Positions 41,850-61,384 of a stretch of 64,000 nucleotides of DNA are shown here, in pieces. Origin of the DNA: Pseudomonas aeruginosa PAO1 (lineage in GTDB: Bacteria > Pseudomonadota > Gammaproteobacteria > Pseudomonadales > Pseudomonadaceae). The stretch's first letter is position 1; the number at the start of each line of letters is the position of its first letter. Made by a program: the position numbers and the translations under genes. Where the stretch lies: the NCBI RefSeq assembly GCF_000006765.1, contig NC_002516.2. One strand, given 5' to 3'. The notes beneath the pieces are model-generated. The model ran no database searches, had not been told where the DNA came from, and saw only the letters and a program-made list of their open reading frames with translations.

Positions 41850-44800
41850 ATGATACGTTTCTGCCCCAACTGCCAGAGCGAACGCTCGCTTTCGGAAATC
41901 TTCTGCGAAGGCTCGATCCAGGGCCAGCCCTGCGGCTGGGACCTTTCCGCCGAAGCCATCCATCCCGCCGGCTGGCGACCACAGCCGGTGCTGACCCAGG
42001 AAGCCATCGCGCCGCCCGCCAGCGAGCCGCCAGCGGCGTCCGCCCCGCTCTGCGCCAACGGCCACCCGCTGCAACCCGGCGACCTGATGTGCCTGGAGTG
42101 CGGCGCCGCGCCGGCCGAAGGCCCGCTGCCGATGCAGGCCGAGGCCACGCCGCAGCCCGCCGTCACGGAAACCCTGATCGACGGCTGGCGTCTGCTGCGG
42201 CAGATCGCCAGCAGCGACGGCGTGCGCGAGCGCTACCTGGCCGAACATGCGGAAAGCGCCCGCCAGGCGGTGCTCACCCTGTATCGCCCGGGCGCCGAGC
42301 CGGACCCGGCGATCTACGACGTGATCCGCCGCCTGCCGCGCGAACACGTACCGGAAATCCTCGCCACCGGCCGCTGGGACGAGCGCGCCTACGAAGTGGT
42401 CGAGGAACTCACCGGCGGCAGCCTCGCCGAGCTCGGCACCGTGCTGGAGGACCGCGAGGCGGTGCGCCACGTGGTCCGCGAGCTGGGCCACGCCCTGCAC
42501 GTGTTCAACGAAGCCGGCCTGCGCCACCGCGACCTGCGCCCGGCCAGCCTGCTGGTGCGCAGCCACGAGCCACTGGACCTGGTGATCAGCGGCTTCGGCT
42601 CGGCGCGCCTGTCGGAGTTCGACCTGGATATCGTCTCGCCGCTGGAGACCAGCCGCTACATGGCCCCCGAGGCGATCGCCGGCGGCGTGGCGGCGGCTTC
42701 CGACTGGTGGAGCCTGGGCATGATCCTGCTGGAGCAGTTGACCCGCGGCGCCTGCTTCGAAGGAGTCAACGCCAACGCCTTCCTGATCCACGTGCTGGCC
42801 AACGGCGTGGCGCTGCCCGACGACCTCGACCCGCAGTTGCACCTGCTGCTGCGCGGCCTGCTTGCACGCGACCGCCACCAGCGCTGGCAGTGGCCGCAGG
42901 TACAGGCCTGGCTGAACGGCGAGGCGGTGGACGCGCCGGCCTCGGCGGACAGCGAAAAGGACGACGCCGAAGGCGCCAGCATCGCCCTCGGCGCACGGCG
43001 CTTCCGCAAGCCGACGGTCTTCGCCCTGGCCGCGGCCCAGGCCGAGCACTGGGCGGAGGCCCTCGACCACCTGCTGCGCGGGGCGATCGTCACCTGGGCC
43101 GAGCACATCGGCCTGTCGCCCAGGCTGCTCGCCGGCCTGCGCCAGGTGGCCCAGCACGAGGGGCTGGAGGACGACTTCCGGCTGATGCTGGCGCTCAAGC
43201 TGCTGAACCCGGAAATCCCGCTGATCCAGCGCGGCGAGATCGTCACCCCCGGCTGGCTGCTGGAGCATCCGCTGGAAGGCTACCGGCTGATCAGCGGCTC
43301 GGTGCCCGACCTGCTCGAACAGTTGCACACCGAAAGCTGGCTGTCGCGGCTCAAGACCCGCGCCGAGAACGTCCGCCAGCGCGCCCTGCACCAGCACATC
43401 GAACTCGCCGAAGAACAGTTGCGCATCTACCTGCTGTCGACCTCGCGGGCGCGCCTCGCCGCGCAGTGGCAGGAGCGCCAGCGCCTCCTGCCGGACACCG
43501 AGCACCCCGGCCTGCTGGCCCTGGCCGAGCGCCGGGTGATCGCCGAGGAAGACCTGATCGTCCTGCTCAGCGCCAACATCGGCCAGTTCCGTGCCGCCGA
43601 GACGATCGTCGAGGAAGCCGCCGGCCTGGCCCGCGACGCCGATGTGCACCTGTTCGACGCGGAGACCGCGCGCGGCCTGTTGCAGCACTCGCGGCAGGAG
43701 TTGTACCGCCGCGTCGACGAACGCATCAGCGGCTTCGCCCACAGCGGCGTGCCCAGGGTCGACGAATGGGCCGAGCAGTTCCGCCTGGAGCGGCGCATGC
43801 CGTTGGCGAGGGTCCTGGTGCTGCTGGCGATCCCGCCGGAACAGTGGCTGGAACCGCAGAAGCAGCAGTACGTGTCGCAGATCCTCGATTTCTTCGAGAA
43901 GAAAGTGGTCGCCGCGGTGATGCGCGGGCCGCTGGTGCGCATGAGCATCGGCAAGAGCACCCCACGCATCGACCTCAACGAACTGGATAGCGCGCGACGC
44001 CCCGCCGCCGCCCTGCTCGACCACCTGCTGCAACGCAACGCCCGCGCGGTGAGCCTCGACCCGGACAGCTTCCTCGCCAACCCGCAACTGGAAGTGCGGC
44101 TCAACGCGCTGTCCCGGCAAAGCTCGCTGTACAAGCGCGACACCGGCATCGACGGGCTCTACCTGGGCTTCCCCTTCCTGCTCAACCGCGACCCGCGCGG
44201 CACCACCCGCACGCGCATCGTGCCGCTGCTGCTGTGGCCGCTGAAGCTGCAACTGGAAGTCGGCAGCCGCGGCCAGGTGGCGCTGGCCTTCGACGGCGAG
44301 CGCGAGGAAGTACGCCTCAACCCGGCCCTGGAAAGCCTGCTCGGCCCCGAGCCGTGCAAGCGCTGGCGCAAGGTCGCCGACGAACTGCTCGGCCGCTCCG
44401 CGCTGCGCGCCGCCGACGTGATGGATGCCTTCGGCCTGCTCGCCACCCCGCGCGGGCGGGTGCTGGAAGGATTGCCGCCGAGTTCCACCGAGGTCACGCC
44501 CTACCAGGACCAACTGGCCTGCGCCGCGGTGCTGTTCCACGTCACCTTCATGGGCCAGGCGATCGGCGAGGACCTGCGCCAGTTGAAGAGCCTGCCGCCC
44601 TCCGGCACCGGCCTGGAGACCGCGCTGCGCCTGCGCGAGAACGGCGAGCCGGAAGCCCGCGAGAGCCCGCCGGAGTTGCAGCGCTACTTCACCGTGGCCA
44701 GCGACCCGTCCCAGGAGGCCGCCGTGTTGCAGGCCCGGCAGAGCCCGGGGCTGCTGGTGGAAGGCCCGCCCGGTACCGGCAAGAGCCAGACCATCGTCAA

Positions 44801-45482
44801 CATGGTCGCCGACGCCATCGGCCGCCAGCGCAGCCTGCTGATCGTCTGCCAGAAGCACGCCGCCCTGGAAGTGGTACACAAGCGCCTGGTGGCCGAGGGC
44901 CTGGGCCAGCGCATCGTCATGCTCAACGACGTCAACCGCGACCGCGAACCGGTGATCCGCAACATCCGCGAGCAGCTCGAAGCGCTGTTCGCCGACGCCG
45001 GCGGCGCCCAGGGCTGGGAGCGCCAGCGCGAGCGCCTGGCGGCGCGTATCGAGGCGCTGGAAGGCGAACTGGACCGCTACCACCAGAGCCTGCACCGCGT
45101 GGACGAGGCCACCGGGCTGAGCTACCGGCGCCTGCTCGGCGAACTGATCGAGCTGGAGAAAGGCTCGCCGCCGCTGGACTTCCCGGCCCTGCGCCACGCC
45201 TGGCGGCGCTGGACATCGGCAGCCTGGCGCGCCTGGAGGAAAACTGCGCGCCGCTGGTCCGCCTCTGGCTACCGGCCCGCTACGAAGGCAGCCCGCTGGC
45301 GCAACTGCGCGCCTTCGCCACCGACCAGGCCACCCTGCAAGCCTTCGCCGACAGCCTGCGCGCCTTCGGCGAAGCGGAGAACGCCCGGCAGAAAGCCCTC
45401 GACGAACACCCGGCGAGCTTCGAGGTCGACGACCCGACGCCCTACCGCGCCTGGCTGGCAAGCCAGGTCGGTACCCTGCTGA
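41850..45482 (+). CDS. N-terminal fragment of a Zn-ribbon / kinase-like / DUF4011-like / SF1 helicase protein (true frame lost at about 45196)
   Basis: CxxC ribbons; HRDLRPAS, GFG, YMAPE, SDWWSLG; Walker A GPPGTGKSQT. Confidence 0.85.
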   Translation: MIRFCPNCQSERSLSEIFCEGSIQGQPCGWDLSAEAIHPAGWRPQPVLTQEAIAPPASEPPAASAPLCANGHPLQPGDLMCLECGAAPAEGPLPMQAEATPQPAVTETLIDGWRLLRQIASSDGVRERYLAEHAESARQAVLTLYRPGAEPDPAIYDVIRRLPREHVPEILATGRWDERAYEVVEELTGGSLAELGTVLEDREAVRHVVRELGHALHVFNEAGLRHRDLRPASLLVRSHEPLDLVISGFGSARLSEFDLDIVSPLETSRYMAPEAIAGGVAAASDWWSLGMILLEQLTRGACFEGVNANAFLIHVLANGVALPDDLDPQLHLLLRGLLARDRHQRWQWPQVQAWLNGEAVDAPASADSEKDDAEGASIALGARRFRKPTVFALAAAQAEHWAEALDHLLRGAIVTWAEHIGLSPRLLAGLRQVAQHEGLEDDFRLMLALKLLNPEIPLIQRGEIVTPGWLLEHPLEGYRLISGSVPDLLEQLHTESWLSRLKTRAENVRQRALHQHIELAEEQLRIYLLSTSRARLAAQWQERQRLLPDTEHPGLLALAERRVIAEEDLIVLLSANIGQFRAAETIVEEAAGLARDADVHLFDAETARGLLQHSRQELYRRVDERISGFAHSGVPRVDEWAEQFRLERRMPLARVLVLLAIPPEQWLEPQKQQYVSQILDFFEKKVVAAVMRGPLVRMSIGKSTPRIDLNELDSARRPAAALLDHLLQRNARAVSLDPDSFLANPQLEVRLNALSRQSSLYKRDTGIDGLYLGFPFLLNRDPRGTTRTRIVPLLLWPLKLQLEVGSRGQVALAFDGEREEVRLNPALESLLGPEPCKRWRKVADELLGRSALRAADVMDAFGLLATPRGRVLEGLPPSSTEVTPYQDQLACAAVLFHVTFMGQAIGEDLRQLKSLPPSGTGLETALRLRENGEPEARESPPELQRYFTVASDPSQEAAVLQARQSPGLLVEGPPGTGKSQTIVNMVADAIGRQRSLLIVCQKHAALEVVHKRLVAEGLGQRIVMLNDVNRDREPVIRNIREQLEALFADAGGAQGWERQRERLAARIEALEGELDRYHQSLHRVDEATGLSYRRLLGELIELEKGSPPLDFPALRHAWRRWTSAAWRAWRKTARRWSASGYRPATKAARWRNCAPSPPTRPPCKPSPTACAPSAKRRTPGRKPSTNTRRASRSTTRRPTAPGWQARSVPC

Positions 45483-45484
45483 AT

Positions 45485-48145
45485 TTGCGCGAGGAGCAGC
45501 GCCAGCGCCTGGCCCACTGGCTGCCGCTGTTCCGTGACGCCGCACCAGGACAGCCGAGCCGTGGCGACGGCCTGTTGGCGGAGGCCGAGCAGATCGAACG
45601 GCAACTGCGCCAGCTCGACCTCGAACGGCATGCGCCGCTGCTGTCGCCGGCCCTCGCCATGCTCGAAGAGAACAACCTCGAACGCTTCCAGGCCCACACC
45701 CGCCAGGTGCTCGAGGCACGCACCTGGCTGGCCCGGCTCAACCCGCTGCACCTGCTGCGGCGCGGCCGCCTGCGGCGCTTCCTGCGCGAGCACGGCGAGG
45801 CCGACGACGACAGCCGCCTGGCCGCCCTCCTCGGCGCCTGCGACCTGGAGCGCCAGTGGCGGCCGCTGCGCCGGCAACTGGCGGCGCTGCAACAGAGCCT
45901 GGGGCTGGCGACAGTCGCCACCGATGCCGGTCCGGAACTGACCGGCCTGGCCGGCCACGCCAGCCAGCAACTGCGCGAGATCCAGACCCTGGCTCGTGGC
46001 CTGGCCCAAGCGCCGCGCGCCGAGCAGCTCGACGCGGTGATCCTCACCGGCGAGAAACAGCGCTTCGAAGCGCTGCTCGGCGACCTCGACGCCGCGCTGA
46101 TCCGCCAGGCCGCACGCCAGCTCAGCCTGGACAAACTGAAGGTGCTCGCCGACTGGCTCGGCGACGAACTGCTGGAACAGCTGCACCGCGCCATCGCCGG
46201 CAACCAGAGCAACCTGCCGGCCCTCGGCCGCCTGCGCGAGGCGCTACCGCAACTGGTCGCCTACCAGCGCTTCCGTGGCCGCGCCGGCCAGCTCGAAGCC
46301 ACCGACCTGGAATTCCTGGCCCTGCTGCGCCAGCGCCAGGAACGACTCGACGCGATTCCCGTCGAAGAACTCGAAGCCACGGTGCGCCGCATGCTCAACC
46401 GCGAAGCGCGGCTGGGCTGGAAGCAGCGCCTGGAACAAGACAATCCGGAACTGCTGTTCAGCCAGGACGAAGCCAGGGCCAGGGTCGCCAGCCTCGCCGA
46501 AGCCGATGTGCAGATGCGCGCGCTGAACCGCGAACTGCTCGGCAAGGGCATCGACGCCGCGCGCCTGGGCAGCCGCAAGCAATGGGAAGACGTCACCCGC
46601 CTGACCGGCAAGCGCTCGCGGCGCCTGCGCGAGTTCATCGAGCTGGGCGCCGAACTCGGCCTGATGAGCCTGCGCCCGGTCTGGCTGATGAACCCCGACC
46701 TGGCCAGCCGCGTGCTGCCGCTCAAGGCCGGGCTGTTCGACATGGTGATCTACGACGAAGCCTCGCAGATGCCGGTGGAGTTCGCCCTGCCGACCCTCTA
46801 TCGCGGGCGGGTCACGGTGGTCAGCGGCGACGAGAAGCAGATGCCGCCGACCGCGTTCTTCTCCAGCCGCGTGGAAAGCGACGAGGCCGAACTGTTCGAC
46901 GGCGAAGCGCCCGACGAGGACGCCGACGAGGAGCAGCGCGAAGCCTACGAGGACACCTGGAACCGCCGCGAGATCAAGGACTGCCCGGACCTCCTGCAAC
47001 TGGCGCGCAACGCCCTGCCCAGCACCACCCTGCAGATCCACTACCGCTCGGCCTACCGCGAGCTGATCGGCTTTTCCAACGCCTCGTTCTACGGCAACCG
47101 CCTGAGCGTGCCGGTACGCCATCCGCAGGCCAACATACTGCGCATCAAGCCGCTGGAACTGATCCAGGTGAACGGCCTGTACCAGAACCAGAGCAACGAG
47201 CGCGAGGCCGAGCGAGTCGTCGACTACCTCGCCGAACTCTGGCGCCAACCCTACGCGGCGCGGCCGTCGGTGGGCGTGGTCACCTTCAACCGCAAGCAAG
47301 CCGACCTCATCGAGGAGCGCCTGGAACTGCGCGCCGAGCAGGACGAGACGTTCCGCGCCGCCTACAGCGAGGAGCGCGAGCGCAGCGAAGACGGCGAGGA
47401 CATGGGCGTGTTCGTGAAGAACGTGGAGAACGTGCAGGGCGACGAGCGCGACGTGATCGTCTTCTCCTCCACCTTCGGCCGCAACGGCCAGGGCAGCTTC
47501 CGGCGCAACTTCGGCGTGCTCGGGCAGACCGGCGGCGAGCGCCGCCTCAACGTGGCGGTGACCCGCGCGCGGCGCAAGGTGGTGATGATCACCTCGATGC
47601 CGATCGGCGACATCTCCGACATGCTCGGCACCCAGCGCTCGCCGAGCAGCCCGCGCGACTACCTGCAAGGCTACCTGGAATACGCCCGCGCACTGTCCGC
47701 CGGCGAATTCGCCGGCACCGGCCAGCTGCTCGAGCGCCTGCAAACCGACCGCAGCGACCAGCGCCGCCAGCACTACCAGCGGCACGACGGCTTCAGCGAG
47801 ATCGTCGGCGAGTATATCCGCTCGCTGGGCTGGTCCGCCGCGCCCGCCGGCGAAGGCGACGCCTTCGGCCTCGACTTCGCCATCGAGAACCCGGCCACCG
47901 GCCTCTACGCCATCGGCATCGAATGCGACGCCCCCTGCCACCCGCTGCTGGAACGCGCCCGCGCCCGGGAAATCTGGCGACCCTCGGTGCTGCGACGGGC
48001 GATCCCGCACCTCCACCGGGTTTCCTCCCAGGGCTGGTACCACGACGGCGACAACGAACGCGCACGGCTGCGCGCCGCCATCGAGAAGGCCCTGGCGCCC
48101 AGCGCGGAAACCCATCCCACGGCAGCAGCGGAGGCCTCCCAATGA
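45485..48145 (+). CDS. C-terminal fragment: SF1 (Upf1/DNA2-like) helicase core plus very-short-patch-type nuclease domain; coding frame actually begins at about 45197
   Basis: DEASQM, GDEKQMPP, HYRS, VQGDERD, RRLNVAVTRAR; C-terminal LDFAI...IGIECD...RVSSQGWY. Confidence 0.85.
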   Translation: MREEQRQRLAHWLPLFRDAAPGQPSRGDGLLAEAEQIERQLRQLDLERHAPLLSPALAMLEENNLERFQAHTRQVLEARTWLARLNPLHLLRRGRLRRFLREHGEADDDSRLAALLGACDLERQWRPLRRQLAALQQSLGLATVATDAGPELTGLAGHASQQLREIQTLARGLAQAPRAEQLDAVILTGEKQRFEALLGDLDAALIRQAARQLSLDKLKVLADWLGDELLEQLHRAIAGNQSNLPALGRLREALPQLVAYQRFRGRAGQLEATDLEFLALLRQRQERLDAIPVEELEATVRRMLNREARLGWKQRLEQDNPELLFSQDEARARVASLAEADVQMRALNRELLGKGIDAARLGSRKQWEDVTRLTGKRSRRLREFIELGAELGLMSLRPVWLMNPDLASRVLPLKAGLFDMVIYDEASQMPVEFALPTLYRGRVTVVSGDEKQMPPTAFFSSRVESDEAELFDGEAPDEDADEEQREAYEDTWNRREIKDCPDLLQLARNALPSTTLQIHYRSAYRELIGFSNASFYGNRLSVPVRHPQANILRIKPLELIQVNGLYQNQSNEREAERVVDYLAELWRQPYAARPSVGVVTFNRKQADLIEERLELRAEQDETFRAAYSEERERSEDGEDMGVFVKNVENVQGDERDVIVFSSTFGRNGQGSFRRNFGVLGQTGGERRLNVAVTRARRKVVMITSMPIGDISDMLGTQRSPSSPRDYLQGYLEYARALSAGEFAGTGQLLERLQTDRSDQRRQHYQRHDGFSEIVGEYIRSLGWSAAPAGEGDAFGLDFAIENPATGLYAIGIECDAPCHPLLERARAREIWRPSVLRRAIPHLHRVSSQGWYHDGDNERARLRAAIEKALAPSAETHPTAAAEASQ

Positions 48146-49491
48146 GCGGACCGAAAGTCGTACGAATCGTCACCCGGGAAGAAGCCATCGCCACCTGCGA
48201 GCGCGACCTGCAACGCCTGGACAAGGCCCTCGCGCGCTGGGAAAACCAGGCCAGCCGGCTCGCCCAGCTCAGCGACGCCGAGCGCGCCGCCGCCCACGCC
48301 CGCCGCGCCAGCCTGCACGCCCTGCTCGAACAGGAACGCTGGCTGGACGTGCAACTACAGGTGAAGATCGAAAGCGAATTCCTCAAGCGCGACCTCGCCG
48401 AACGCGAAGAGCGCGCCATCCGCCAGGCCGCGGAAACGCGCCAGCAACACCGCCGCCTCCAGGAAAACGCCAGCGCCCTGCTCCAGGCCCTCGACGCCAG
48501 GCCCGATGCCGCCAGCGCGGCACTCCGGCAAACCCTGCATACGCTGGCCGACGGCGCCCTCCGCGACGACGCGGAAGCCCTGCTCGCCCAAGGCCTCGCC
48601 GCCCTCGCCAGCGCCCCCGCCGAAGAACGCCTCAGCGAAGCCCAGCGCGAACTCGCCCAGCGCCTGAAGACCGGCGAAACGCCCATGTCCCTGGAACAGT
48701 GGCGCGCCCGCCAGCAACAGGACGCCCCGCACGAACAGCGCCTGGCGCGCATCGACCGGCACATCGCCGAACTGCAACTGCTGCAAGGCGAGGCCAGCGC
48801 CCAAGCGTTCCTCGAGCGACTGGCACGCGCCGAAGCCGAACAGCGCCCGGAGCGCCGCAACCTGCTGCTCGACAGCCTGGTCCTCGACCTCGCCCAGGCC
48901 GCCCGCGAACACCAGCAGCAACGCCAGCGCCTGGAACACCTGCAAGACCTCGCCAGCGAAGTCGCCGCCCTGGGCGCCGCCGAACACGCCGAACTGCTCC
49001 AGCGCGCCGCCGCCTGCCAGCCCGACAGCGATCCGCAGCAACTCGCCGAACTCACCGAGCGATGCAACGCCATCCTCACCGCCCACCTCCAGCAACAGGC
49101 CGCCCTCGCCCGCCGCCAGGCCGTGCTCCAGGGCCTCGCCAGCCTCGGCTACGAAGTCCGCGAAGGCATGGCCACCGCCTGGGCGCAGACCGGCAGGGTC
49201 GTCCTGCGCAAACCCGCCACCCCCGGCTACGGCCTGGAAGTCGGCGGCAAGGCCGACAACGGCCGCCTGCAACTGCGCGCCGTCGCCCTCAACGCCAACC
49301 GCGACAGCCAGCGCGACCGCGACATCGAAACCCTCTGGTGCGGCGAATTCCAACGCCTCCAGGCCCTGCTCGCCGCCCAGGGCGGCGAACTCAGCGTGGA
49401 ACGCGCGCTGGGAGTGGGAGAAGTGGCGTTGAAGGAGATTGGCGAGGAGGAGCAGCGGGAGATGGGGGTGGCGCGGCAGAGGGGGTTGTGA
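48142..49491 (+). CDS. Coiled-coil hypothetical protein, 449 aa
   Basis: ATG overlaps the helicase stop (ATGA); long Ala/Gln/Glu/Arg heptad region and a compact C-terminal domain. Confidence 0.8.
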   Translation: MSGPKVVRIVTREEAIATCERDLQRLDKALARWENQASRLAQLSDAERAAAHARRASLHALLEQERWLDVQLQVKIESEFLKRDLAEREERAIRQAAETRQQHRRLQENASALLQALDARPDAASAALRQTLHTLADGALRDDAEALLAQGLAALASAPAEERLSEAQRELAQRLKTGETPMSLEQWRARQQQDAPHEQRLARIDRHIAELQLLQGEASAQAFLERLARAEAEQRPERRNLLLDSLVLDLAQAAREHQQQRQRLEHLQDLASEVAALGAAEHAELLQRAAACQPDSDPQQLAELTERCNAILTAHLQQQAALARRQAVLQGLASLGYEVREGMATAWAQTGRVVLRKPATPGYGLEVGGKADNGRLQLRAVALNANRDSQRDRDIETLWCGEFQRLQALLAAQGGELSVERALGVGEVALKEIGEEEQREMGVARQRGL

Positions 49492-49541
49492 AGGGGCCGG
49501 CTGGCGCCTCGGCGAGGCATTCGATCCGGGCAGTCCATCGC

Positions 49542-49570
49542 TTGACCCCTGGATGCCCCCTCGCTACCCT
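49542..49570 (+). promoter_or_regulatory. Sigma70-like promoter TTGACC-17-TACCCT upstream of the C4-like leader
   Basis: Read directly. Confidence 0.55.
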
Positions 49571-49608
49571 GCCGGCCAGGTGCTGAACACACCTTCTCTA
49601 GGCGGTTA

Positions 49609-49637
49609 GCCGCTCCCGAAAGCCAAGCGGTTTTTTT
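49609..49637 (+). terminator. Leader attenuator hairpin plus T7
   Basis: GCCGCT...AGCGG-TTTTTTT, with a competing hairpin GCGG-TTAG-CCGC just upstream. Confidence 0.6.
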
Positions 49638-49680
49638 GCGTCCATAAGTTTTGCAGGATCTAATCTTCGGTCATGCCCGC

Positions 49681-49768
49681 TTATGGCCGGGTGGCGCGCA
49701 GCCATACAAGACCCTTCGGGGGAAAACTGCGGGCCGTCCTAGAGCGGTGTTCAAGCGCCCGGCCGCCT
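49681..49768 (+). ncRNA. C4-like antisense RNA (phage P1 c4 / P4 CI type)
   Basis: Closing stem TGGCCGGGTGGCGC...GCGCCCGGCCG, internal hairpin CCCTTCGGGG, and CCTAGAG/GTGTTCA segments complementary to upstream and downstream CTCTAGG/TGAAC(AC) repeats. Confidence 0.7.
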
Positions 49769-49812
49769 CTCTGAACAGGAGGCGAAACTGAACGATCTCT
49801 AGGAAAAAACTC

Positions 49813-50037
49813 ATGACCATCAAGAAAGCTTCTCTTTCGAAGTCTCGGCATTTAAAAGTCGGTTATCAGCTTTATGAAAGCCGTCATAGCGACTGGGAAC
49901 GTCGTGGCAAACCACGGCAAATTCCCTACCTGCGGTTGAGTGGCGATTGGCTGGAGGCTGCGGGCTTTGAGGTTGGCTGCAAGGTGAGCATTCAGGTCAC
50001 CAGGCGGCGCCTTGTCATGCAAGTGGTTGAGGATTGA
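49813..50037 (+). CDS. symE: SymE-family type I toxin, 74 aa
   Basis: LKVGY...PYLRLSGDWLEAAGFEVG...IQV matches the SymE AbrB-like signature; AGGA RBS. Confidence 0.85.
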   Translation: MTIKKASLSKSRHLKVGYQLYESRHSDWERRGKPRQIPYLRLSGDWLEAAGFEVGCKVSIQVTRRRLVMQVVED

Positions 50038-50042
50038 GGCCA

Positions 50043-50081
50043 AGCGCCCCTCGGGCAGAGGGTATCTGCTCAGGGGGCGCT
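50043..50081. terminator. GC-rich hairpin after symE
   Basis: AGCGCCCC...GGGGCGCT outer stem with an inner GGCAGA/TCTGCT stem; no long U tract. Confidence 0.4.
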
Positions 50082-51613: not shown

Positions 51614-51643
51614 GTTATTTCTCCATTCTTTCCTGCCACGATA

Positions 51644-52231
51644 TCACCGGTGAAGATTCACATTGACATGCACGACATGGATCAGCTCTGCGCTCACATG
51701 CCTGTGATCGCTGACATAAGCCCATTTCATCGGGTGATCGAATGTCGCTCCATGTTGATACGCGGGAAGATCGGCATCTGCCTTTTTACGCAGTCTGAGC
51801 ACTAGTTCAGCAATGCCAGGCTTCTTGAAGTACTCGACGACATAGCCACGGCCTTGCCGCCCAGTGGAGTAGCGGGAAACCAACTGTTCGATCGCCTGCG
51901 CGTGATACGTGGGTCCTGCATAGATCTTCGCCTCAGCCAGCCGCTGCTCTGGAAACATCATGCTCTCAGCCCTGATCGTTAGATCGACCCGCCCATTGCT
52001 GTATCCCTCACGCGTCACAGCAAGGCCCGGCATCCTCAAAGCTGCCGCTAGGAACGCGGATAGCTTTTCTTCGCTGTCAGCAGTTAAGTGATGGGCTTCC
52101 GCTTCCATGCGCTGAACACAATCCTCGAAATGACGGTCAAGAAAATCGTCGAACTCCTCCGCCGTTCTGGCTTGGAATAATTTTCGCAGCACTGGAAACC
52201 AGCCCAACAGTGTTTTCAGACTATCGCCCAT
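51644..52231 (-). CDS. Hypothetical protein with a restriction-endonuclease-like E..D..EAK motif (ATG 52231)
   Basis: SEEKLS, GRVDLTI, LAEAKIY; start overlaps the hsdR stop. Confidence 0.7.
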   Translation of the reverse strand: MGDSLKTLLGWFPVLRKLFQARTAEEFDDFLDRHFEDCVQRMEAEAHHLTADSEEKLSAFLAAALRMPGLAVTREGYSNGRVDLTIRAESMMFPEQRLAEAKIYAGPTYHAQAIEQLVSRYSTGRQGRGYVVEYFKKPGIAELVLRLRKKADADLPAYQHGATFDHPMKWAYVSDHRHVSAELIHVVHVNVNLHR

Positions 52232-55200
52232 GCGCAATCCTCTGTGCATCTTGAAGCGCCCAACGAATCGACAGGCATTCGGCCCAGTCGTCGCCCTCCG
52301 GATCTTTCTGCGCCAATAAGCGCACTTCGTCGAAACTCATCGTCTGTGGAGTATCCGTGCTGCCTACACGGACAAACTCTCGATTCAGGATTCCGACATC
52401 GTGGGCCGATAACAGATTCAGAACGGGAAACAGAACATGGCTTACCGACAACCCGCTGGTTTCTTCGATGAGGGCGAGATCGGCAATACCCAGACTGTTC
52501 CTTCCTCCCGCTGCCAATCTATCCAGTAGCATATCCACGGCTTGTGACCAGACCACCGCAGCATCGAATCTGTCTCGAACAATGTCCAACGCACGCATAC
52601 GGACATCCTCTACCCCATGGGCAGGGTTCTGCTGGTACGTCACATCGAACACCATGTCCGTCAGCCAGCGTTTGAAATTCGGGTTGTCGCTGAACTGCTT
52701 GAACAATTCTGTGTGGTCGGACAGCAGCTCCAGCACAACCCGGTTGAGTGCCTTGTCGTGCTCCAACTTGGCGTTCTGGCGGTCGGAGTTGACCTGCGCG
52801 TTCTGATACGCTTTGTCCTGCGCCACGCGCACCGGAATTTCCTCGGCGATGACCTTGCCGATTTTGTCGGCATCCTTCCAGTCGATGTTGCCGAAAAGAT
52901 CGTTGAAGGTTTTGAGGATGTTCGACAGCTTGTCGATATCCGGCTCGCCCTTGCCGCCACCGCCACCGACCGGAGCCACTTCGACTGTGGCGTCGGTATC
53001 GTCCATCGCCATCTTGAGTGCAGCCCGTGCTTCAACACGGTAACTGTCGATGTCGATGGATTCGAGTACACCCTTCGACAGATCCTCTTCCTTCGGCGCG
53101 GGCAGCTTCGGGATCAGGAAATTCAGGAAGATCGACAACTTCTCCCATGCCGGATGGCCGTAGCTCAGGATCGCGGCGAGGAAGCCGTAGCTGCGTACAA
53201 AGGCTTTGGCCTTGCCCTTGAACTCGACCTGGTTGTCCTCGTCCAGATTGGCTTGGTATTGCTCGACGCAGTGATCGAGGATGGGATCGAGTTTGTCGCG
53301 GTCGGCACCACTGAGATACAGCGCCACCAAGTCCTCTACCTGCGGCCAGCTGTAGATCTGCTTGTCATCCAGATCGGCTTTCAGGTCATGCAGCTTGTTG
53401 GCATCGGTTTCACCGGTCTGGATCGTAGCGCGGTAGTAGTCCTGGAACGCCTTCTTCACAGCTTCGGCGTTGTCGGCGAAGTCCAGCACGAAGGTGTCAT
53501 GCTTTTGCGGGTGCGCTCGGTTCAGGCGCGATAGCGTCTGCACCGCCTGTACGCCCGCCAGCTTCTTGTCCACATACATCGTATGCAGCAGCGGCTCATC
53601 GAAGCCGGTGACGAATTTGTTGGCGACGATCAGAAAGCGATACGGGTCTTGCCTGAGCCTGTCCGGAATCTCCTTGCTCGGGAAATCGTTGAGGTCGGCC
53701 TCGGTCTTCTTTTCGCCGCCAATCTCGAACTCGCCCGAGTACGCGACGATGGCTTTGTACGGGCTCTTGATCTGTTCGAGATAATCCGACACCTCGCGCC
53801 AGTAGTCGATGGCCCGTGCAATGCCATTGCAGACGATCATTGCCCGCGCCTTGCCACCGATCTTCTTGGCGCCCATCACCTGTGCGACGAAGTGATCAAC
53901 CATGATCTCCGCCTTGCGCCGGATGGCCTTGTCGTGGGATTCGACGTAGTGGCGGATCTTTTTCAAGGCCCTGGCCTTGTCGAAGTCCGGATCGTTCTCC
54001 ACCGTCTTGGCGACCTGGTAGAAACTGTCCAGCGTGGTGTAGTGGGCAATCACGTCGAGGATGAAACCCTCCTGTATCGCCTGTTTGGTGGTGTAGGTCA
54101 GTTCCTCTGGCGAGCGGAATTCCACCTTGTCGTCCACCACGGTCTTCTCGCCGAACAGTTCCAGTGTCCTGTTCTTGGGCGTGGCGGTGAAGGCGAAGTA
54201 GCTGGCGTTGGACAGCATCCGACGCGACTGAATGCGCTTCTCGATCTCGGTGTTCACCGCGTCCTGCGTCGCGTCTTCCTCGAAAGCCTCCTCGTCGGTC
54301 TTGCCGGAAAGGGCTTCATGCATCCTGGCCGTGGTCTTGCCGCCCTGGCTGGAGTGCGCCTCGTCGATCAATAGCGCGAACGTCCTGCCCGACAGGTCGC
54401 CGATTTCTTCGAGGATGAAGGGAAACTTCTGCACCGTGGTCACGATGATCTTCCGGCCCCGGCGCAGGTAGTCGCGCAGTTCCTGCGCGTTGTCGGAATG
54501 GCCGAAAATCGAAGCCACATGGTCGTAGCCCTTGATGGTGCGCGCGATCTGCGTATCCAGCGCACGCCGGTCGGTGATGACGATGATGGAATCGAACTGC
54601 GGCATCAAAGGGTCGGCTACGCTGCGCAACTCCACCAACTGGTGCGCCAGCCAAGCAATGGTGTTGCTCTTGCCGCTACCTGCCGAGTGCTGGATCAGGT
54701 AACGCTTGCCCACACCGTCGCTGCGAGTGCGGCGCAGCAGGGCGCGCACGGTGCGCAACTGGTGGAAGCGGGGAAACACCGGCTTGCGCTTTTTCTTCTT
54801 CCGCCCTGTGGTGGCGTCGGTTTCCTGCTCCTCCACCACCTGCGCGAAGCTTTCGATGATGTTGGCCAGCGATTCCTTGGCCAGCACCTGCTTCCACAGG
54901 TAATCGGTCTTCAAGCCGTTGGGGTTGGGCGGGTTGCCCGCACCGTTGTTCCAGCCCTGGTTGAATGGCAGGAACCACGACGCCTTGCCCTTCAGCTCCG
55001 TGCAGAAATACACCTCGGCATCGTCTACCGCGAAGTGCGCGATGCAGCGCCCCGGCTGGAACAGCAGCTCCTGCGGGCTGCGTGTGCTCTGGTACTGGAC
55101 GATGGCATCGGCCACGGTCTGCTTGGTCAGCGAGTTCTTCAACTCGAAGGTCAGCACCGGCAGGCCGTTGACGAAGATCACCAGGTCGAGTTCGTTGCCG

Positions 55201-55661
55201 GAGTCGTGACTGTAGCGTACCTGCCGGGTGATGCTGAAGATGTTCCGGCCAAAGGCCTCGGCGGCGTTGGTGTTGCCCGGCGTGGGCAGCAGCCTGTAGA
55301 GATCGACCCTCACCGGCCCATGGCTTACGCCCTTGCGCAGCACATCCACCACACCGCGCTTGGTGATCTCGCCTTGCAGGCGATGCAGGAACTGTGTGCG
55401 CTTGATGCCCTCGTGCGCCAACTCCAGCGTTTCCACCGCATCAGGCTGCGTGGCTTGCAGAAAGGCCAGCAGTTGCACGGTATCCAGCGCCACATCGCGG
55501 TTGAAATCCGTCGCTCGGCCCAGTACGTAGCCGCCCAGTGCATAGATGGCCCCCGGACTCTGTACGGCATTTGGAGGAACGGAAGCATGCTCGCTGATAC
55601 CCGCCAGGTGGCGCACGATCAATTGCTCCAGTGCCTTCTCGCTGGTATCGGTGGGTTTCAT
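52221..55661 (-). CDS. hsdR: Type I restriction endonuclease subunit R, 1146 aa
   Basis: Nuclease DLVIFVNGLPVLTFELK, Walker A QHSAGSGKS, DEAH, FTATPK, TGFDEP. Confidence 0.95.
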   Translation of the reverse strand: MKPTDTSEKALEQLIVRHLAGISEHASVPPNAVQSPGAIYALGGYVLGRATDFNRDVALDTVQLLAFLQATQPDAVETLELAHEGIKRTQFLHRLQGEITKRGVVDVLRKGVSHGPVRVDLYRLLPTPGNTNAAEAFGRNIFSITRQVRYSHDSGNELDLVIFVNGLPVLTFELKNSLTKQTVADAIVQYQSTRSPQELLFQPGRCIAHFAVDDAEVYFCTELKGKASWFLPFNQGWNNGAGNPPNPNGLKTDYLWKQVLAKESLANIIESFAQVVEEQETDATTGRKKKKRKPVFPRFHQLRTVRALLRRTRSDGVGKRYLIQHSAGSGKSNTIAWLAHQLVELRSVADPLMPQFDSIIVITDRRALDTQIARTIKGYDHVASIFGHSDNAQELRDYLRRGRKIIVTTVQKFPFILEEIGDLSGRTFALLIDEAHSSQGGKTTARMHEALSGKTDEEAFEEDATQDAVNTEIEKRIQSRRMLSNASYFAFTATPKNRTLELFGEKTVVDDKVEFRSPEELTYTTKQAIQEGFILDVIAHYTTLDSFYQVAKTVENDPDFDKARALKKIRHYVESHDKAIRRKAEIMVDHFVAQVMGAKKIGGKARAMIVCNGIARAIDYWREVSDYLEQIKSPYKAIVAYSGEFEIGGEKKTEADLNDFPSKEIPDRLRQDPYRFLIVANKFVTGFDEPLLHTMYVDKKLAGVQAVQTLSRLNRAHPQKHDTFVLDFADNAEAVKKAFQDYYRATIQTGETDANKLHDLKADLDDKQIYSWPQVEDLVALYLSGADRDKLDPILDHCVEQYQANLDEDNQVEFKGKAKAFVRSYGFLAAILSYGHPAWEKLSIFLNFLIPKLPAPKEEDLSKGVLESIDIDSYRVEARAALKMAMDDTDATVEVAPVGGGGGKGEPDIDKLSNILKTFNDLFGNIDWKDADKIGKVIAEEIPVRVAQDKAYQNAQVNSDRQNAKLEHDKALNRVVLELLSDHTELFKQFSDNPNFKRWLTDMVFDVTYQQNPAHGVEDVRMRALDIVRDRFDAAVVWSQAVDMLLDRLAAGGRNSLGIADLALIEETSGLSVSHVLFPVLNLLSAHDVGILNREFVRVGSTDTPQTMSFDEVRLLAQKDPEGDDWAECLSIRWALQDAQRIAHGR

Positions 55662-56732
55662 GCGTCGTCTCCCTTCTTCTTGCCCGGCTTATTGTCGAGT
55701 TGGTGCGGCGGTTCGATCTGCTTGAGCAGACGATCGAAATCGCTTTCGAACAGCCTGTCCTGCACGATGCGGTATTTCTCGAATTCGCTTTCGGCGTGCG
55801 CCCTGGCGATTTCGGCGGTGACTCGGCCCGCGTCCTGCAGCACCTCGCGGTCAGTCGCTTCGATGAAGCGGTTCAGGCGCGTTTCCCAATCCTGCATGGT
55901 CATGGGGATCTTGCGCAGCGCCATGCTTTCAGCCACATCCAGATACGCGTTCACCAGCCGGGAAAGTTGCGCCATTTCGTCTTCGGTCAAATAGTTCTTG
56001 GCGACCGCCACATCGAACTTCTGGATTTTTCCTAATGACGCATCCGTCCACGTGGTCAGTCCCATATGCTGCTTGTTGGCGTCGGCGCGGGTATGGACGA
56101 CTTCTGCTGCCGTCTGCCCGTGGATGGCCCTGTGCAGCTTGTTCTGCACCGTGGCGAAGAAGCGTTTGGTGGCTTGCGCCGTCACGTCGTAGTCGATGGA
56201 CGTGGCGTAGATGTCGGTGATCTTCTGGTAGAACTTGCTCGGACAGGCGAATCTCGCGAACGCGCTGGAGCTGCTCCTCGAAGTAGCGTTCCGTCAGGAC
56301 GGAGCCACCGCTTTTCAGGCGCTGATCGTCCATCGTGTAGCCCTTGACGGCGAACTCCTCAACGATGGTCGTCGCCCACTTGCGGAACTGCAGGGCGCGT
56401 TCGGAATTCACCTTGTAGCCCACGGCGATGATGGCCGCGAGGTTGTAGTGCTGGGTGTCGTAGCTTTTGCCGTCGGAAGCAGTTATCCGAAATTTTCGGA
56501 TAACTGCTTCCGCCTGCAACTCGCTGTCGGAAAACACTTTCTTCAGGTGGTAGTTGACGGTGCGCACATCCACGTCGTAGAGCTGAGCCATCATTTTTTG
56601 CGTCAGCCAGACGTTTTCGTCGGCGTACACGGCCTCCACGCCGCCCTGCCCGGTGGCCGCAATGAACGTCAGGTATTCCGCCGCTGAGGAGCGCACCAGC
56701 GCGGTTTGCGTCGTTGTATCGGCCTTTTTCAT
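55658..56732 (-). pseudogene. RhuM-family protein with an apparent 2-bp deletion near 56237
   Basis: VWLTQKMMAQLY, HYNLAAIIAVGYKVNS, FRKWAT in frame 55929..56732; the continuation KFYQKITDIYATSIDYD...FFATVQNKLH is in frame 55658..56185. Confidence 0.85.
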
Positions 56733-56756
56733 GGGCGATCCAGTGGGCAGGCCAGA

Positions 56757-58130
56757 TCAGTCTTCAGCATCGGCTTCCTCGTCATCGCTACTACCTGCGT
56801 CATCATCTCCCAACGCGGCAAGGTCGTCGTCGCTCACCACATCGTCCGGGCCGGGCTGCCAGCCGCGCAGGTCTACTTGACCGGTGACGGCATCGGCGAT
56901 CAGGCGGTCGCGGTATTCGCGGATGAGCTTGATCTCGTCCTCGGCGCGGGCGATGGTTTCGTCCAAGTCTTTCGTCTCGCGCCCTATGTGCGACAGGATC
57001 GCTTCCTGTTCATCTTTGCGAGGAATCGGAAGCCGAACATTGCCGATGAAGTTCCAATCGGCGCGTGGCATCTTCGCACCCGCCGTCGAACTGCTGATTA
57101 GGTCAATGACACGCTTGCAGCGCAGTAGTTGTTCAAGATATGCGGGCAAGATGAGTTCTTGGCGAGAACGTAGTACGAGAAACTCACTTACGCATACACC
57201 AGCACAAACCACTCGCGTTACCTTCGCCAAGTACGGACGGAGCTTGCCGAACAGTACATCGTCTGCAACAAACCGCTTCACCGTGCTCGCAAATTCGACT
57301 TCGCCGCCGAGCGGTCGCGCCACACCCGTCCAGCTTTGGACGTGCTCCAATGCGAGATAAATTTCGTCATCCGCCTTCGTCGTGGTCTGGCTGGTGATGT
57401 TGCCGGCAAGGAACTTCAGACGCTTCACTTCCCAATGTGCTGGCACCTCGCCTAGCCACTCGATATCGGAAGGTTTGAGCTTGACCGACGCATCTAGCCC
57501 ACGCGTGACGGCGTGGTCGATGATGCGCAGCTTCTGTTCGGTCAGCAGCGCAATGAGATCGCGCTTGGCCCTGATGAAGCAGGCGATATGCGCGTCCTGC
57601 GTACGCAGGTAGGTGACGATCTGGTCTTGCTCAGGGCGCGGCGGAACCAGCGATGGCATCTGCTTGAAGGATTCCCAATACAGACGGTTGCGGTCAGCCA
57701 CGATGCCACGAGAGAACTTGTTCACCTCTTGCATGTAAGCCGCAGTGCGGAACAAGTAGCTGAAATAGGTGCTGTTGGCTTCTGCATAGGGCTTGACTAC
57801 GACATAAGCAGGGCTGACCAAGCCATCCTCCGGCACGGGGCCGACCGCGCCCTGCCACATGCGCATCATGTTGTAGGCAATGTCACCCTTGACGGCACGC
57901 TTGTACTTCTCCTTCTGGCTCATGACCTGCTTGCGCTTCAGGTTGTCCATATCGCGCACCCGCACACCGGTGCGCAGCGACACTTCCAGAATAGGCAGAT
58001 CAGGAAAGCCGGTTTCCACGCGATGGCCAAACAACCGTCCATTACGCAGCACCTGCCAACCTTCGGGTACCTGCGGGACCCAAGGGAGGCCGGATACACG
58101 GTAGCTGGGATATCTGCTCGTGGCTGTCAT
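56757..58130 (-). CDS. hsdS: Type I R-M specificity subunit S
   Basis: Two TRDs with conserved spacers (PPRPEQDQIV, PRKDEQEAIL), YRDRLIADAVTG; TGATG coupling with hsdM. Confidence 0.93.
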   Translation of the reverse strand: MTATSRYPSYRVSGLPWVPQVPEGWQVLRNGRLFGHRVETGFPDLPILEVSLRTGVRVRDMDNLKRKQVMSQKEKYKRAVKGDIAYNMMRMWQGAVGPVPEDGLVSPAYVVVKPYAEANSTYFSYLFRTAAYMQEVNKFSRGIVADRNRLYWESFKQMPSLVPPRPEQDQIVTYLRTQDAHIACFIRAKRDLIALLTEQKLRIIDHAVTRGLDASVKLKPSDIEWLGEVPAHWEVKRLKFLAGNITSQTTTKADDEIYLALEHVQSWTGVARPLGGEVEFASTVKRFVADDVLFGKLRPYLAKVTRVVCAGVCVSEFLVLRSRQELILPAYLEQLLRCKRVIDLISSSTAGAKMPRADWNFIGNVRLPIPRKDEQEAILSHIGRETKDLDETIARAEDEIKLIREYRDRLIADAVTGQVDLRGWQPGPDDVVSDDDLAALGDDDAGSSDDEEADAED

Positions 58131-60508
58131 CAAGCTGTCCCCACGATCTTGTGCAACAAACCTTCCGTCTGCTGCTCCAGCTTCAGGATATCGGCGCGGA
58201 TGTCGTCCAGCGGACGCAGCGGCGTCGGCTTATAGAAGTAGCGGGCGAAGGAGATTTCGTAGCCGATCTGGGTCTTCTCGCCGTCGATCCACGCATCCGG
58301 CGCGTGCGGCAGCACTTCGCGCTCGAAGAAGGCGTCGATGCCACCAAGTTCCTTCAACGGCACTTGCTCGGTGTCGCGCAGATCGGCATCCGGTTCATAC
58401 CAGACGACTTCGCGGTGCTTGCCCGTTTCGATGAAGTAGCGGCCATCGAAACTCGGAATGAAGGCGTCGCTGGCTTTCAGCTTGTGCCGCTTGGCCACCA
58501 CTGGCGGCGCGGTGTCGTCACGCCAGCTCACCGCCTTGAAGATGGCTTTTTTGTCTGCCGCAGTGAGCTTTTTGTCATGTGCCTTCATCGCTATATCGAA
58601 TTCCGCCCGAAAGACATTGTGGTCATCGAATACGGCGTCACCCAAAACCTTCTGCGCCAGCAGCGCCAGATCGAGCAGCCCCTTGTCGCGTTGCCAGGTC
58701 GTGGCATCGAGCAGCCTCTTGCGACGCTTTTCTGGCACGGCTTTCTTCGCGTGTGTGCCTTCTTCGTCGCCGTCCTCGGCATCATCATCGTCCTCGCTGC
58801 CACCCTTGAGCCAAGCTTCGATTTCGGGCTTCAGTTTGGCAAAGCTGGTGTAGAGCTTGTCACCATGCTCGGCGTAGATCTCGGTGCGCAACTCCTCGTC
58901 GCCACTGGCGAAACGCAGGGTATCAATGGCGCTGGTTTTCAACTGGCTCTTCAGGCGCAGTGGGCGTTCGACCGTGATCTTCCAGTAGCCGAAGTCCTGC
59001 GTGTCGAACCATTTGCTTTGATCGGTGCTGGAGTCGGTTTCCTGCGCTTCGCCCAAATACAGGTCGAGAATGCGCCGGATGTCGCCCTCTGCCAGCTCAC
59101 AGTTCTTCTTGCCAAGATTGCGGCGCAGTGGCGCGAACCACTGGCTCGCGTCGATCAACTGCACCCTGCCCTTGCGATGCTCAGCTTTTTTGTTGGCCAG
59201 CACCCATATATAGGTGGCGATCCCAGTGTTGTAGAAAATGTTGAGCGGCAGGGCGATGATGGCTTCCAGCCAGTCGTTCTCCAGTACCCAGCGGCGGATA
59301 TTGCTTTCGCCTTGGCCAGCGTCGCCAGTGAATAGCGCCGAGCCGTTGTGGACGAGGGCGATGCGGCTGCCGAGCGCGGTGTCATGTTTCATCTTGGACA
59401 GCTTGTTCACCTGGAACATGAGCTGCCCGTCGCTGGAGCGAGTGATGAGCTTGAACTCGGCATCGCCGCCGTGATTGACGATAAAGCGCGGGTCGCTGAA
59501 CTCCTTCTTGCCGCCCATGCGCTCCAGATCGGTCTTCCAACTCTTGCCGTAGGGCGGATTGGAAATCATGAAGTCGAATTCGCGCGAACGGAACTGATCG
59601 GCGGATAGCGTGGATTTATCCGCCCCGCCGACGATGTTCTCCGCTTCCGCCCCTTCGCCTTTCAGCAGTAGGTCGGCCTTGCAGATGGCGTAGGTTTCAT
59701 CACTGATTTCCTGCCCGAACAGATGGATGGAGACGTCCTTGCCGTGCTGCTCAGCCAGTTCCTTCAAGGCTTCCTCGGCCACTGTGAGCATGCCGCCCGT
59801 GCCACAAGAGCCGTCGTACAGCGAATAGGTGCTGGACTCGATCCGGTCGGCCACTGGTAGGAACAGCAGCTTGGCCATGAGTTGAACGACGTCGCGCGGG
59901 GTGAAGTGCTCACCGGCCTCTTCGTTGTTCTCTTCGTTGAAGCGGCGGATCAACTCCTCGAACACCGTACCCATGCCATGGTTGTCGAGCGCGGGCAGCT
60001 TGGTGCGCCCGTCGGCATCCTTGACCGGCAGCGGCGAGAGATTGACCTCGGGATCGAGGAAGTCTTCGATCAGGTAGCCGAGGATATGGGCATCCACCAG
60101 CTTCTGGATCTGGTTGCGGAAATTGAACTTGGTGAGAACTTCCTGCACGTTGGGCGAGAAACCGTCCAGATAAGCGATGAAGTCCTCGCGCAGCCGCTGC
60201 CCGGCAGCACTGGCCTTGAGCTTGGCCAAGGTGAACTCGGAAACGTTGTAGAAGGCTTGTCCGGCAGCGGCCTGGAGCGCGCCGTTCTGATTCGCCACTT
60301 TGGCGCTGTCCAGCAGCTTCTTGCGTTCCAAGACTGCCTGTTTGGTCGGTTCCAGCACTGCATCGATCCGCCGTAGCACGGTAAAGGGCAGGATCACATC
60401 GCGGTACTTGCCACGAACGTAGACGTCGCGCAGACGGTCGTCAGCGATATTCCAGATGAAATCGGCGACCCACTTGATCTGGCTTTGGTCTTGCTGTCGT
60501 TTCTGCAT
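58130..60508 (-). CDS. hsdM: Type I R-M N6-adenine methyltransferase subunit M
   Basis: GEHFTPRDVV, YDGSCGTGGML (motif I), ISNPPYG (motif IV). Confidence 0.95.
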   Translation of the reverse strand: MQKRQQDQSQIKWVADFIWNIADDRLRDVYVRGKYRDVILPFTVLRRIDAVLEPTKQAVLERKKLLDSAKVANQNGALQAAAGQAFYNVSEFTLAKLKASAAGQRLREDFIAYLDGFSPNVQEVLTKFNFRNQIQKLVDAHILGYLIEDFLDPEVNLSPLPVKDADGRTKLPALDNHGMGTVFEELIRRFNEENNEEAGEHFTPRDVVQLMAKLLFLPVADRIESSTYSLYDGSCGTGGMLTVAEEALKELAEQHGKDVSIHLFGQEISDETYAICKADLLLKGEGAEAENIVGGADKSTLSADQFRSREFDFMISNPPYGKSWKTDLERMGGKKEFSDPRFIVNHGGDAEFKLITRSSDGQLMFQVNKLSKMKHDTALGSRIALVHNGSALFTGDAGQGESNIRRWVLENDWLEAIIALPLNIFYNTGIATYIWVLANKKAEHRKGRVQLIDASQWFAPLRRNLGKKNCELAEGDIRRILDLYLGEAQETDSSTDQSKWFDTQDFGYWKITVERPLRLKSQLKTSAIDTLRFASGDEELRTEIYAEHGDKLYTSFAKLKPEIEAWLKGGSEDDDDAEDGDEEGTHAKKAVPEKRRKRLLDATTWQRDKGLLDLALLAQKVLGDAVFDDHNVFRAEFDIAMKAHDKKLTAADKKAIFKAVSWRDDTAPPVVAKRHKLKASDAFIPSFDGRYFIETGKHREVVWYEPDADLRDTEQVPLKELGGIDAFFEREVLPHAPDAWIDGEKTQIGYEISFARYFYKPTPLRPLDDIRADILKLEQQTEGLLHKIVGTA

Positions 60509-61306: not shown

Positions 61307-61384
<78 letters not shown>

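Follow-up and report, generated by a model that had tools for sequence, protein, structure and literature searches.

Several described systems resemble the small-RNA cassette analyzed here, which precedes symE, a gene of the SymE toxin family, in Pseudomonas aeruginosa PAO1 (assembly GCF_000006765.1, contig NC_002516.2). Throughout, "the window" is the whole stretch of this genome that was analyzed, 64,000 nucleotides (nt) in length. In phages P1 and P7 the immI operon encodes the antisense RNA c4 (Citron and Schuster 1990). C4 is known as a substrate of RNase P. In P4, as a later report summarizes, CI is a processed RNA derived from a leader transcript and acts by premature termination of transcription (PMC4825925). 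The same report deals with the IsrK/STnc1160-orf45-anrP region of Salmonella Gifsy-1, where a leaky terminator gives rise to a short leader RNA, IsrK, that acts in trans to open a translationally silent read-through RNA; the long transcript has two conformers, a stable processed RNA (STnc1160) is found downstream of IsrK, and the authors liken the arrangement to P4 seqA/CI (PMC4825925). Among type I toxins, SymE alone has been described as phylogenetically widespread (PMC5367252). The small-RNA family sRNA-Xcc1 was founded on a discrete 88-nt RNA of Xanthomonas campestris, seen by Northern blotting and by rapid amplification of cDNA ends (RACE; PMC2996969). The Xanthomonas and Xylella literature treats this RNA as trans-acting and virulence-linked, with many predicted targets and reported control by HrpG/HrpX, and for the Xylella homologue a possible role as an effector across kingdoms has been considered. 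It has also been noted upstream of symE in Xanthomonas integron cassettes, where a divergent mode of regulation was suggested and no mechanism was given (bioRxiv 10.1101/2025.06.18.660453).

In the PAO1 cassette a promoter is followed by a leader that carries two short boxes, a1 and b1, and ends in a terminator-like hairpin. Behind the leader lies a small RNA in which the boxes b' and a' are complementary to those of the leader, and between this RNA and symE stands a second set of boxes, a2 and b2 (Table 1). Box b2 overlaps the Shine-Dalgarno sequence of symE, AGGA (49801-49804), which is located 8 nt upstream of the ATG at 49813. We consider it probable that the cassette is a switch of the C4/CI/IsrK class, in which a co-transcribed antisense RNA represses the translation of symE. 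An antisense layout of this kind, placed in front of symE, had been proposed in an initial annotation made from the letters of the sequence, and the comparative evidence supports it as the probable means of symE control: the boxes co-vary among relatives, b2 lies on the Shine-Dalgarno sequence throughout the family, the cargo in phages is an antirepressor, and one phage contig carries comparable units in tandem. Direct reading of the sequence finds the promoter, the boxes, the terminator and the Shine-Dalgarno overlap where they had been placed. Neither the RNA family nor the SymE family is new, and their adjacency was noted in 2025 in Xanthomonas integrons. The papers searched give no a1/b1 - a'/b' - a2/b2 wiring and no link to C4 for sRNA-Xcc1, although Chen et al. 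2011 (RNA Biol), which lies outside that coverage, might note a likeness to C4.

Table 1. Coordinates of the symE cassette and of neighbouring features in the window
Feature	Coordinates	Strand	Basis
PDC-S37-like candidate defence gene: protein kinase, DUF4011, AAA_11/AAA_12 helicase, MTES_1575 nuclease	41850..48145	+	
Protein of 449 amino acids (aa), no family match; always precedes the cassette in P. aeruginosa	48142..49491	+	
Sigma-70-type promoter: TTGACC (49542-49547), 17-nt spacer, TACCCT (49565-49570)	49542..49570	+	Read directly
Leader hairpin AGGUG/CACCU, 7-nt loop holding box a1, TGAACAC (49584-49590)	49578..49594	+	Fold of the leader alone
Box b1, CTCTAGG (49596-49602), with CGGU extension able to pair with the 5' strand of RNA hairpin 2	49596..49606	+	Read directly
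Intrinsic-terminator-like leader hairpin, CCGCT (49610-49614)/AGCGG (49626-49630), followed by T7 (49631-49637)	49610..49637	+	Read directly
Three-way-junction RNA of 88 nt, sRNA-Xcc1 (RF02221)	49685..49772	+	Rfam covariance model
Box b', CCTAGAG, the hairpin-2 loop of the RNA	49738-49744	+	Read directly, Rfam structure
Box a', GTGTTCA, hairpin-2 3' strand and single-stranded junction before the closing stem	49747-49753	+	
Target boxes a2, TGAAC (49789-49793), and b2, CTCTAGG (49797-49803); A 49804 pairs too	49789..49804	+	Read directly
symE, intact SymE-family toxin gene, 74 aa	49813..50037	+	Pfam PF08845
GC-rich inverted repeat directly 3' of the symE stop; putative transcript end	50043..50081	+	Read directly
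Type I restriction-modification island in lower-GC DNA: hsdR, RhuM-family gene, hsdS, hsdM	52221..60508	-	

The RNA at 49685-49772 is a member of the Rfam family sRNA-Xcc1 (RF02221), with a score of 82.6 bits (gathering score 53), an E-value of 1e-13 and a match to model positions 1-87 of 87. It is the sole above-threshold Rfam match in the whole window, and its 88 nt equal the length of the RACE-mapped RNA of X. campestris. A scan with the C4 and c4-a1b1 models had been suggested as a check; on 49300-50300 the C4, c4-a1b1, isrK and SymR models give no match even at E<=10; the family is sRNA-Xcc1 instead, and SymR (RF01809) has no match in the window at its gathering score. The three-way junction of closing stem, hairpin 1 and hairpin 2 shows strong co-variation: over 65 distinct relatives, in an alignment that is itself fitted to the covariance model, 96.3% of the cells are paired, against 37-51% in slid controls, and 18 of the 21 base pairs change on both sides. 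In the window the closing stem is followed by GCC. Of 59 members, 42 have an R-C-C directly 3' of this stem and 31 have (T/A)AT ahead of the 5' end.

Relatives of the cassette (L-numbers label related loci and contigs in this analysis) were sought in plasmids, in viral contigs and in metagenomes. By blastn the regulatory part was found without symE in two plasmid records, a KPC-carrying P. aeruginosa megaplasmid (L002), in which it precedes a BRO-family gene, and an Arsenophonus plasmid (L003), in which it precedes a Rha-family gene. The b box of both differs from that of the window and is altered identically in the leader, the RNA loop and the ribosome-binding site (RBS). A blastn search of the phage collection with the cassette gave no match. 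Viral contigs were then scanned with a pattern of the RNA core (window 49704-49724, any letters being allowed at one base and in the tetraloop) and after that with a covariance model of three RNAs. This gave 67 sites, and those that were re-tested in Rfam are all sRNA-Xcc1.

Across about 75 related loci b' and a' change together with the matching boxes a1/b1 upstream and a2/b2 downstream. Across the 62 non-redundant viral and plasmid loci b' occurs in 60 versions and a' in 45. In 39 of these loci all four flanking boxes are complementary to the RNA of the same locus over at least 6 nt, a result given by 0.5% of the pairings between different loci. Mean duplex energies agree with this: on the RBS side the cognate value is -18.5 kcal/mol and the non-cognate value -12.8 kcal/mol, and on the leader side they are -23.6 and -17.4 kcal/mol, respectively. 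For the specificity region of the window RNA, RNAduplex gives -26.2 kcal/mol with the leader (non-cognate mean -18.1) and -18.1 kcal/mol with a2/b2. The end of b2 lies at a median of 9 nt upstream of the start codon, and b2 abuts or overlaps a Shine-Dalgarno-like motif in 47 of 51 loci. Within the window itself the bipartite motif TGAAC-N(1-10)-CTCTAGG has three matches on the two strands, all within the cassette (shuffle mean 0.06; none of 100 shuffles reached three), while CTCTAGG alone is unremarkable, with four copies found and 3.7 expected.

The promoter and the leader terminator are conserved in position as well. Of 18 related cassettes, 16 have a TTGACN-17/18-TAnnnT promoter 7-8 nt upstream of the leader hairpin. 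Of 67 loci, 49 have a GC stem closing on a run of Ts after b1 and before the RNA, and this stem occurs in seven compensatory variants. In one related cassette (L118 cassette 2) a G-C pair of the leader-hairpin stem is replaced by A-U, and a1 is altered jointly with a' and a2. A generic promoter and terminator scanner called neither the cassette promoter nor the leader terminator of the window (the 11-nt terminator loop exceeds its limit). It likewise called no promoter between the leader terminator and the RNA, and no minus-strand promoter at the symE locus. The inverted repeat behind symE lacks a T-run and was not called by the scanner; its first part is found in other alleles too.

These features suggest the following course of events. 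The sigma-70 promoter would start a transcript near 49577, whose leader would display a1 in a hairpin loop with b1 beside it and then meet a partial terminator, so that many transcripts would end at 49637. Read-through RNA would yield a discrete, stable RNA of 88 nt, by analogy with the Xanthomonas homologue and with C4 of P1. RNase P probably releases this RNA, given the C4 precedent, the tRNA-like closing stem and the frequent R-C-C behind it. The boxes b' and a' would then pair with a2/b2, the Shine-Dalgarno sequence would be covered, and symE would be left untranslated. The leader boxes a1/b1 appear to be the stronger partner and are most likely a competitor, either in cis or as a short terminated leader RNA. 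We infer a competitor, and not a classical attenuator, because the leader duplex is the more stable one (-26.2 versus -18.1 kcal/mol) and the candidate antiterminator strand does not track the terminator. How much SymE is made would then depend on the proportion of leader RNA to mature RNA, as has been shown for IsrK in Salmonella. In the predicted fold of the full-length transcript a1/b1 pairs with a'/b' and the Shine-Dalgarno sequence is free; in the predicted leaderless fold b' pairs with b2 and a' with a2 in cis.

The genes that follow the RNA give further clues to its function. Downstream open reading frames (ORFs) of the 62 viral and plasmid loci match Rha (9), Bro-N (9), P22_AR_C (8), AntA (8), P22_AR_N (6), KilA-N (4), SymE (4), ORF6N (2) and ANT (1), and several otherwise unassigned ORFs of 80 aa match PHROG antirepressor families. 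On phage and plasmid contigs the cargo is thus almost always an antirepressor, whereas on chromosomes and in integron-like arrays it is SymE. Because an antirepressor lies downstream and the target is on the RBS, the RNA family in mobile elements would act as c4 does in P1. The comparative data say that the primary targets of sRNA-Xcc1 are probably its own flanks and that in phages it would be an immunity RNA for antirepressors. For an RNA so far treated as a virulence-linked, trans-acting regulator this would be a mechanism that can be tested base by base.

A search for SymE relatives in viral contigs found none, and a scan of genome contigs with a single SymE protein found only a distant SymE of Chitinophagaceae (L001), with no RNA upstream. 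In metagenomes 13 of 18 SymE loci have the RNA about 40 nt upstream of symE. At least six b specificities occur among the SymE-linked cassettes; in each of them b1 and b2 fit b', with one G.U pair and one mismatch overall, and in one cassette, L118 cassette 2, the a box is also changed and is matched in a1, a' and a2. This cassette belongs to an integron-like array (L118 1-2000) that holds two RNA-symE cassettes of orthogonal a and b specificity. In front of both stands one and the same attC-like repeat, about 50 nt long and with GTTAGGC at its end. A metagenomic SymE cassette (L122, 345-470) and the BRO cassette of the megaplasmid L002 (3111-3240) have identical boxes and regulatory regions that are closely similar by eye (identity was not computed), and the two sequences part from about the start codon onward. 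This likeness points to cargo exchange or possible cross-talk. It suggests that the control cassette is portable and its cargo exchangeable: promoter, leader, RNA, target and Shine-Dalgarno sequence would form one unit, with an antirepressor or a toxin swapped in at the start codon.

One phage contig (L066, 2380-3880) places the C4 and sRNA-Xcc1 types side by side, as an isrK-C4 unit, an Xcc1 unit and a second isrK-C4 unit in tandem on one strand. No ORF belongs to the first C4 unit, which continues into the Xcc1 promoter; paralogous Rha-like genes follow the Xcc1 unit and the second C4 unit. The C4 sites score 52-74 bits, and the C4 model gives no cross-match on the Xcc1 site. The C4 and Xcc1 units nevertheless have a common order (promoter, a1 in a hairpin loop, b1, terminator, RNA, a2, b2 on the Shine-Dalgarno sequence, ATG) and similar promoters, and both place b' in the loop of hairpin 2 and a' in the junction. 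An Rfam isrK match immediately precedes C4, where the window has its leader, and this isrK leader likewise ends in a terminator.

Compared with c4 of the P1/P7 immI operon (RF01695, clan CL00128), the window RNA is of similar size and likewise has a closing stem, two hairpins, a single-stranded junction and a CC-rich 3' tail. Its specificity boxes are also in the hairpin-2 loop and the junction and match upstream and downstream sites on the same strand, of which the downstream one coincides with the first ORF's RBS, and antirepressors are the cargo in relatives of the window cassette. Hairpin 1, however, is longer in the window RNA and has a conserved internal loop, the closing stem has 9 base pairs instead of 17, the hairpin-2 loop has 6 nt instead of 12, and the cargo is a SymE toxin and not icd/ant, with no repressor-controlled operator evident. 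Relative to X. campestris sRNA-Xcc1 the agreement extends to the covariance-model family, the length of 88 nt and the position upstream of symE in Xanthomonas integrons; the P. aeruginosa host, a site that is not an integron cassette and the flanking defence genes are different. The IsrK region resembles the window in having a leader with upstream boxes that ends at an intrinsic terminator, with an RNA downstream. Unlike IsrK, the window leader has no match to isrK (RF01394) or c4-a1b1 (RF03163), and the regulated gene is SymE, where in Gifsy-1 it is an antirepressor that switches on an antiterminator. P4 CI, with seqA/seqC, comes from an untranslated leader transcript, as the window RNA would, and is likewise complementary to sites upstream and downstream of itself, but the downstream site of the window is on the Shine-Dalgarno sequence.

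The gene itself was correctly taken for symE in the initial annotation. The protein matches SymE_toxin (PF08845) with 61.1 bits (cut-off 29) over profile positions 2-53 of 54, carries all the invariant columns of the SymE alignment and is 84-99% identical to P. aeruginosa proteins; with those named SymE family toxin the identity is 93-99%. The SymE-SymR pair of E. coli shares with the window the SymE_toxin domain and a small RNA predicted to block the translation initiation region. SymE of E. coli has about 113 aa. The window differs in having no SymR-like RNA, in that the predicted RNA is upstream on the same strand rather than antisense, and in lacking a LexA-like box: the pattern CTG-N10-CAG, which is that of the LexA box, is absent from 49400-49900. 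Short SymE toxins without SymR form a clade for which the RNA of the cassette is a candidate regulator.

Some of the observations weigh against the switch. The -10 element of the window, TACCCT, agrees with the consensus at three of six positions and is the weakest of 16 aligned family promoters. Folding z-scores of the leader, the RNA and the 5' untranslated region (5'-UTR), taken as single sequences, are no better than those of shuffles, so the case rests on co-variation and not on energy. Since the C4, c4-a1b1 and isrK models give no match, what is shared with C4 is architecture, short of proven homology; we therefore file the RNA under sRNA-Xcc1 as one that probably works like C4, and claim no membership of the C4 family. 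The leader had been called an attenuator; its terminator part stands, as the conserved and compensated GC stem indicates, while alternative hairpins are not supported by co-variation. For a classical attenuator, an upstream GCGG would form the hairpin alternative to the terminator, and we do not claim one, because the upstream strand does not co-vary (it tracks the terminator stem in one of 13 variant loci).

The natural alleles bear on the same question. The intact module of the window recurs in other genomes. On most P. aeruginosa contigs, however, the form is one (L140-L143) in which the cassette is 98-99% identical and the boxes are intact, and symE is split by one frameshift into overlapping ORFs of 54 and 33 aa. 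In a third class (L113-L115, L119, L120) the promoter, a1/b1 and terminator are kept, the RNA and a2 are lost, and an intact symE has a different 5' end. Two metagenomic loci (L124, L132) keep the promoter and a1/b1 and an intact symE and have lost the RNA by other routes, so that RNA loss has taken at least three independent forms. Because the RNA-less alleles keep an intact symE, the RNA is not indispensable wherever symE is intact. The RNA-deleted and the symE-frameshifted alleles argue against a strictly obligate toxin-antitoxin (addiction) pair in P. aeruginosa, and they leave room for a module that may be decaying in many strains. They also form a ready comparison series of intact module, frameshifted toxin and deleted RNA.

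Decay on a larger scale would make the module a largely inert remnant in this strain, a cassette of phage or integron origin caught beside a defence hotspot, with a weak promoter, a toxin that is being lost and a layout that reflects ancestry instead of present function. The poor -10 element, the frameshifted symE behind a nearly identical cassette on most contigs, the repeated loss of the RNA and a frameshift in the neighbouring PDC-S37-like gene of the window would all fit such a remnant. We nonetheless think it unlikely, since the boxes, the RNA and the 74-aa symE of the window are all intact and the same intact allele is present in other genomes, while the compensatory box changes of SymE-linked cassettes elsewhere require selection on pairing. 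A smaller departure from the switch would be a riboregulator that works in cis only, with the junction staying in the mRNA as part of the 5'-UTR and toggling between pairing with a1/b1 (Shine-Dalgarno sequence open) and with a2/b2 (closed). Both states appear among the predicted folds, and the long IsrK transcript has two such conformers. Against this, the founding member of the family is a discrete RNA whose RACE size equals the model length, a stable processed STnc1160 is reported downstream of IsrK, and the tRNA-like closing stem with R-C-C behind it in 42 of 59 members fits processing; we regard a purely cis-acting element as improbable.

Still less probable is that sRNA-Xcc1 is an independent trans-acting RNA directed at unlinked host or virulence genes and that its adjacency to symE is hitch-hiking, as the target-prediction lists and HrpG/HrpX control of the Xanthomonas and Xylella homologues could be taken to mean. 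In about 75 loci, which show 60 or more specificities, the loop and junction sequences are matched to the flanking sequence at the same locus, the boxes fall on the Shine-Dalgarno sequence of the next gene (47 of 51), and no further site in the window matches both boxes. As DNA, the three box sets are a bipartite motif present in two direct copies and an inverted one, and some relatives are located in integron-like arrays, which might suggest that the boxes are sites in DNA, either protein operators or recombination sites such as attC remnants. However, they differ at nearly every locus with no linked, co-evolving gene for a DNA-binding protein, the inverted copy always coincides with the loop and the single-stranded junction of an RNA whose structure co-varies, and the same 47 of 51 loci have b2 on the Shine-Dalgarno sequence. 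Integron cassettes such as those of L118 carry attC-like repeats, whereas between 49001 and 50700 of the window there is neither an attC core (GTTAGGC/GCCTAAC) nor similarity to the L118 repeat. A role of the boxes at the level of DNA is accordingly the explanation to which we give the least credence.

If symE is indeed repressed by a co-transcribed antisense RNA, the resident RNA could conceivably be wired into immunity to phages and plasmids. The leader of an invader acting as a decoy, or a shut-off of host transcription, would drain the RNA and free SymE; conversely, the resident RNA would silence the antirepressor of an invader. The idea of a trigger sensed through RNA comes from the control of mobile-element antirepressors by the same family and from the identical boxes of L122 and L002, and we hold it to be a long shot. 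Were it true, the module would be an RNA-sensed trigger of abortive infection, a role that the initial annotation had raised too, at a defence-island hotspot, and the many box specificities would be the signature of an arms race, comparable to the heteroimmunity of P1 and P7.

The surroundings of the cassette bear out the earlier placement at the edge of a defence island, with the PDC-S37-like gene upstream, the type I restriction-modification island downstream and a site that is variable in other strains. GC content falls from 0.70 to 0.47 downstream of the cassette, and the lower-GC island ends at a tRNA-Pro gene (61307-61383) beside pheT. Other strains have MazG-like and SLFN-type helicase genes, an integrase, an insertion sequence element or nothing at the same site. 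Because these contents vary between strains, the cassette appears to be the fixed edge of a variable defence hotspot. The PDC-S37-like gene of the window consists of two overlapping frames, due to one frameshift; L113-L115 have a single product of 2098 aa in the same position. Between symE and hsdR (50660-52249, minus strand), in the stretch with the lowest GC content of the window, are ORFs of 317 and 201 aa that have no Pfam match, and the 201-aa ORF shows a weak PADLOC match to PDC-S54 (E 2e-4).

Some minor observations concern other RNA genes. In the window ARAGORN predicts a tRNA-Trp of 98 nt at 20257-20354; this length is unusual, and the prediction may be false or may reflect an element resembling a tRNA. 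The Arsenophonus plasmid L003 has a sub-threshold SymR-like Rfam match on the minus strand at 771-841 (36 bits; gathering score 61). On the same plasmid five tRNA genes are clustered at 115-607, upstream of a KilA-N gene and of the Xcc1-Rha unit.

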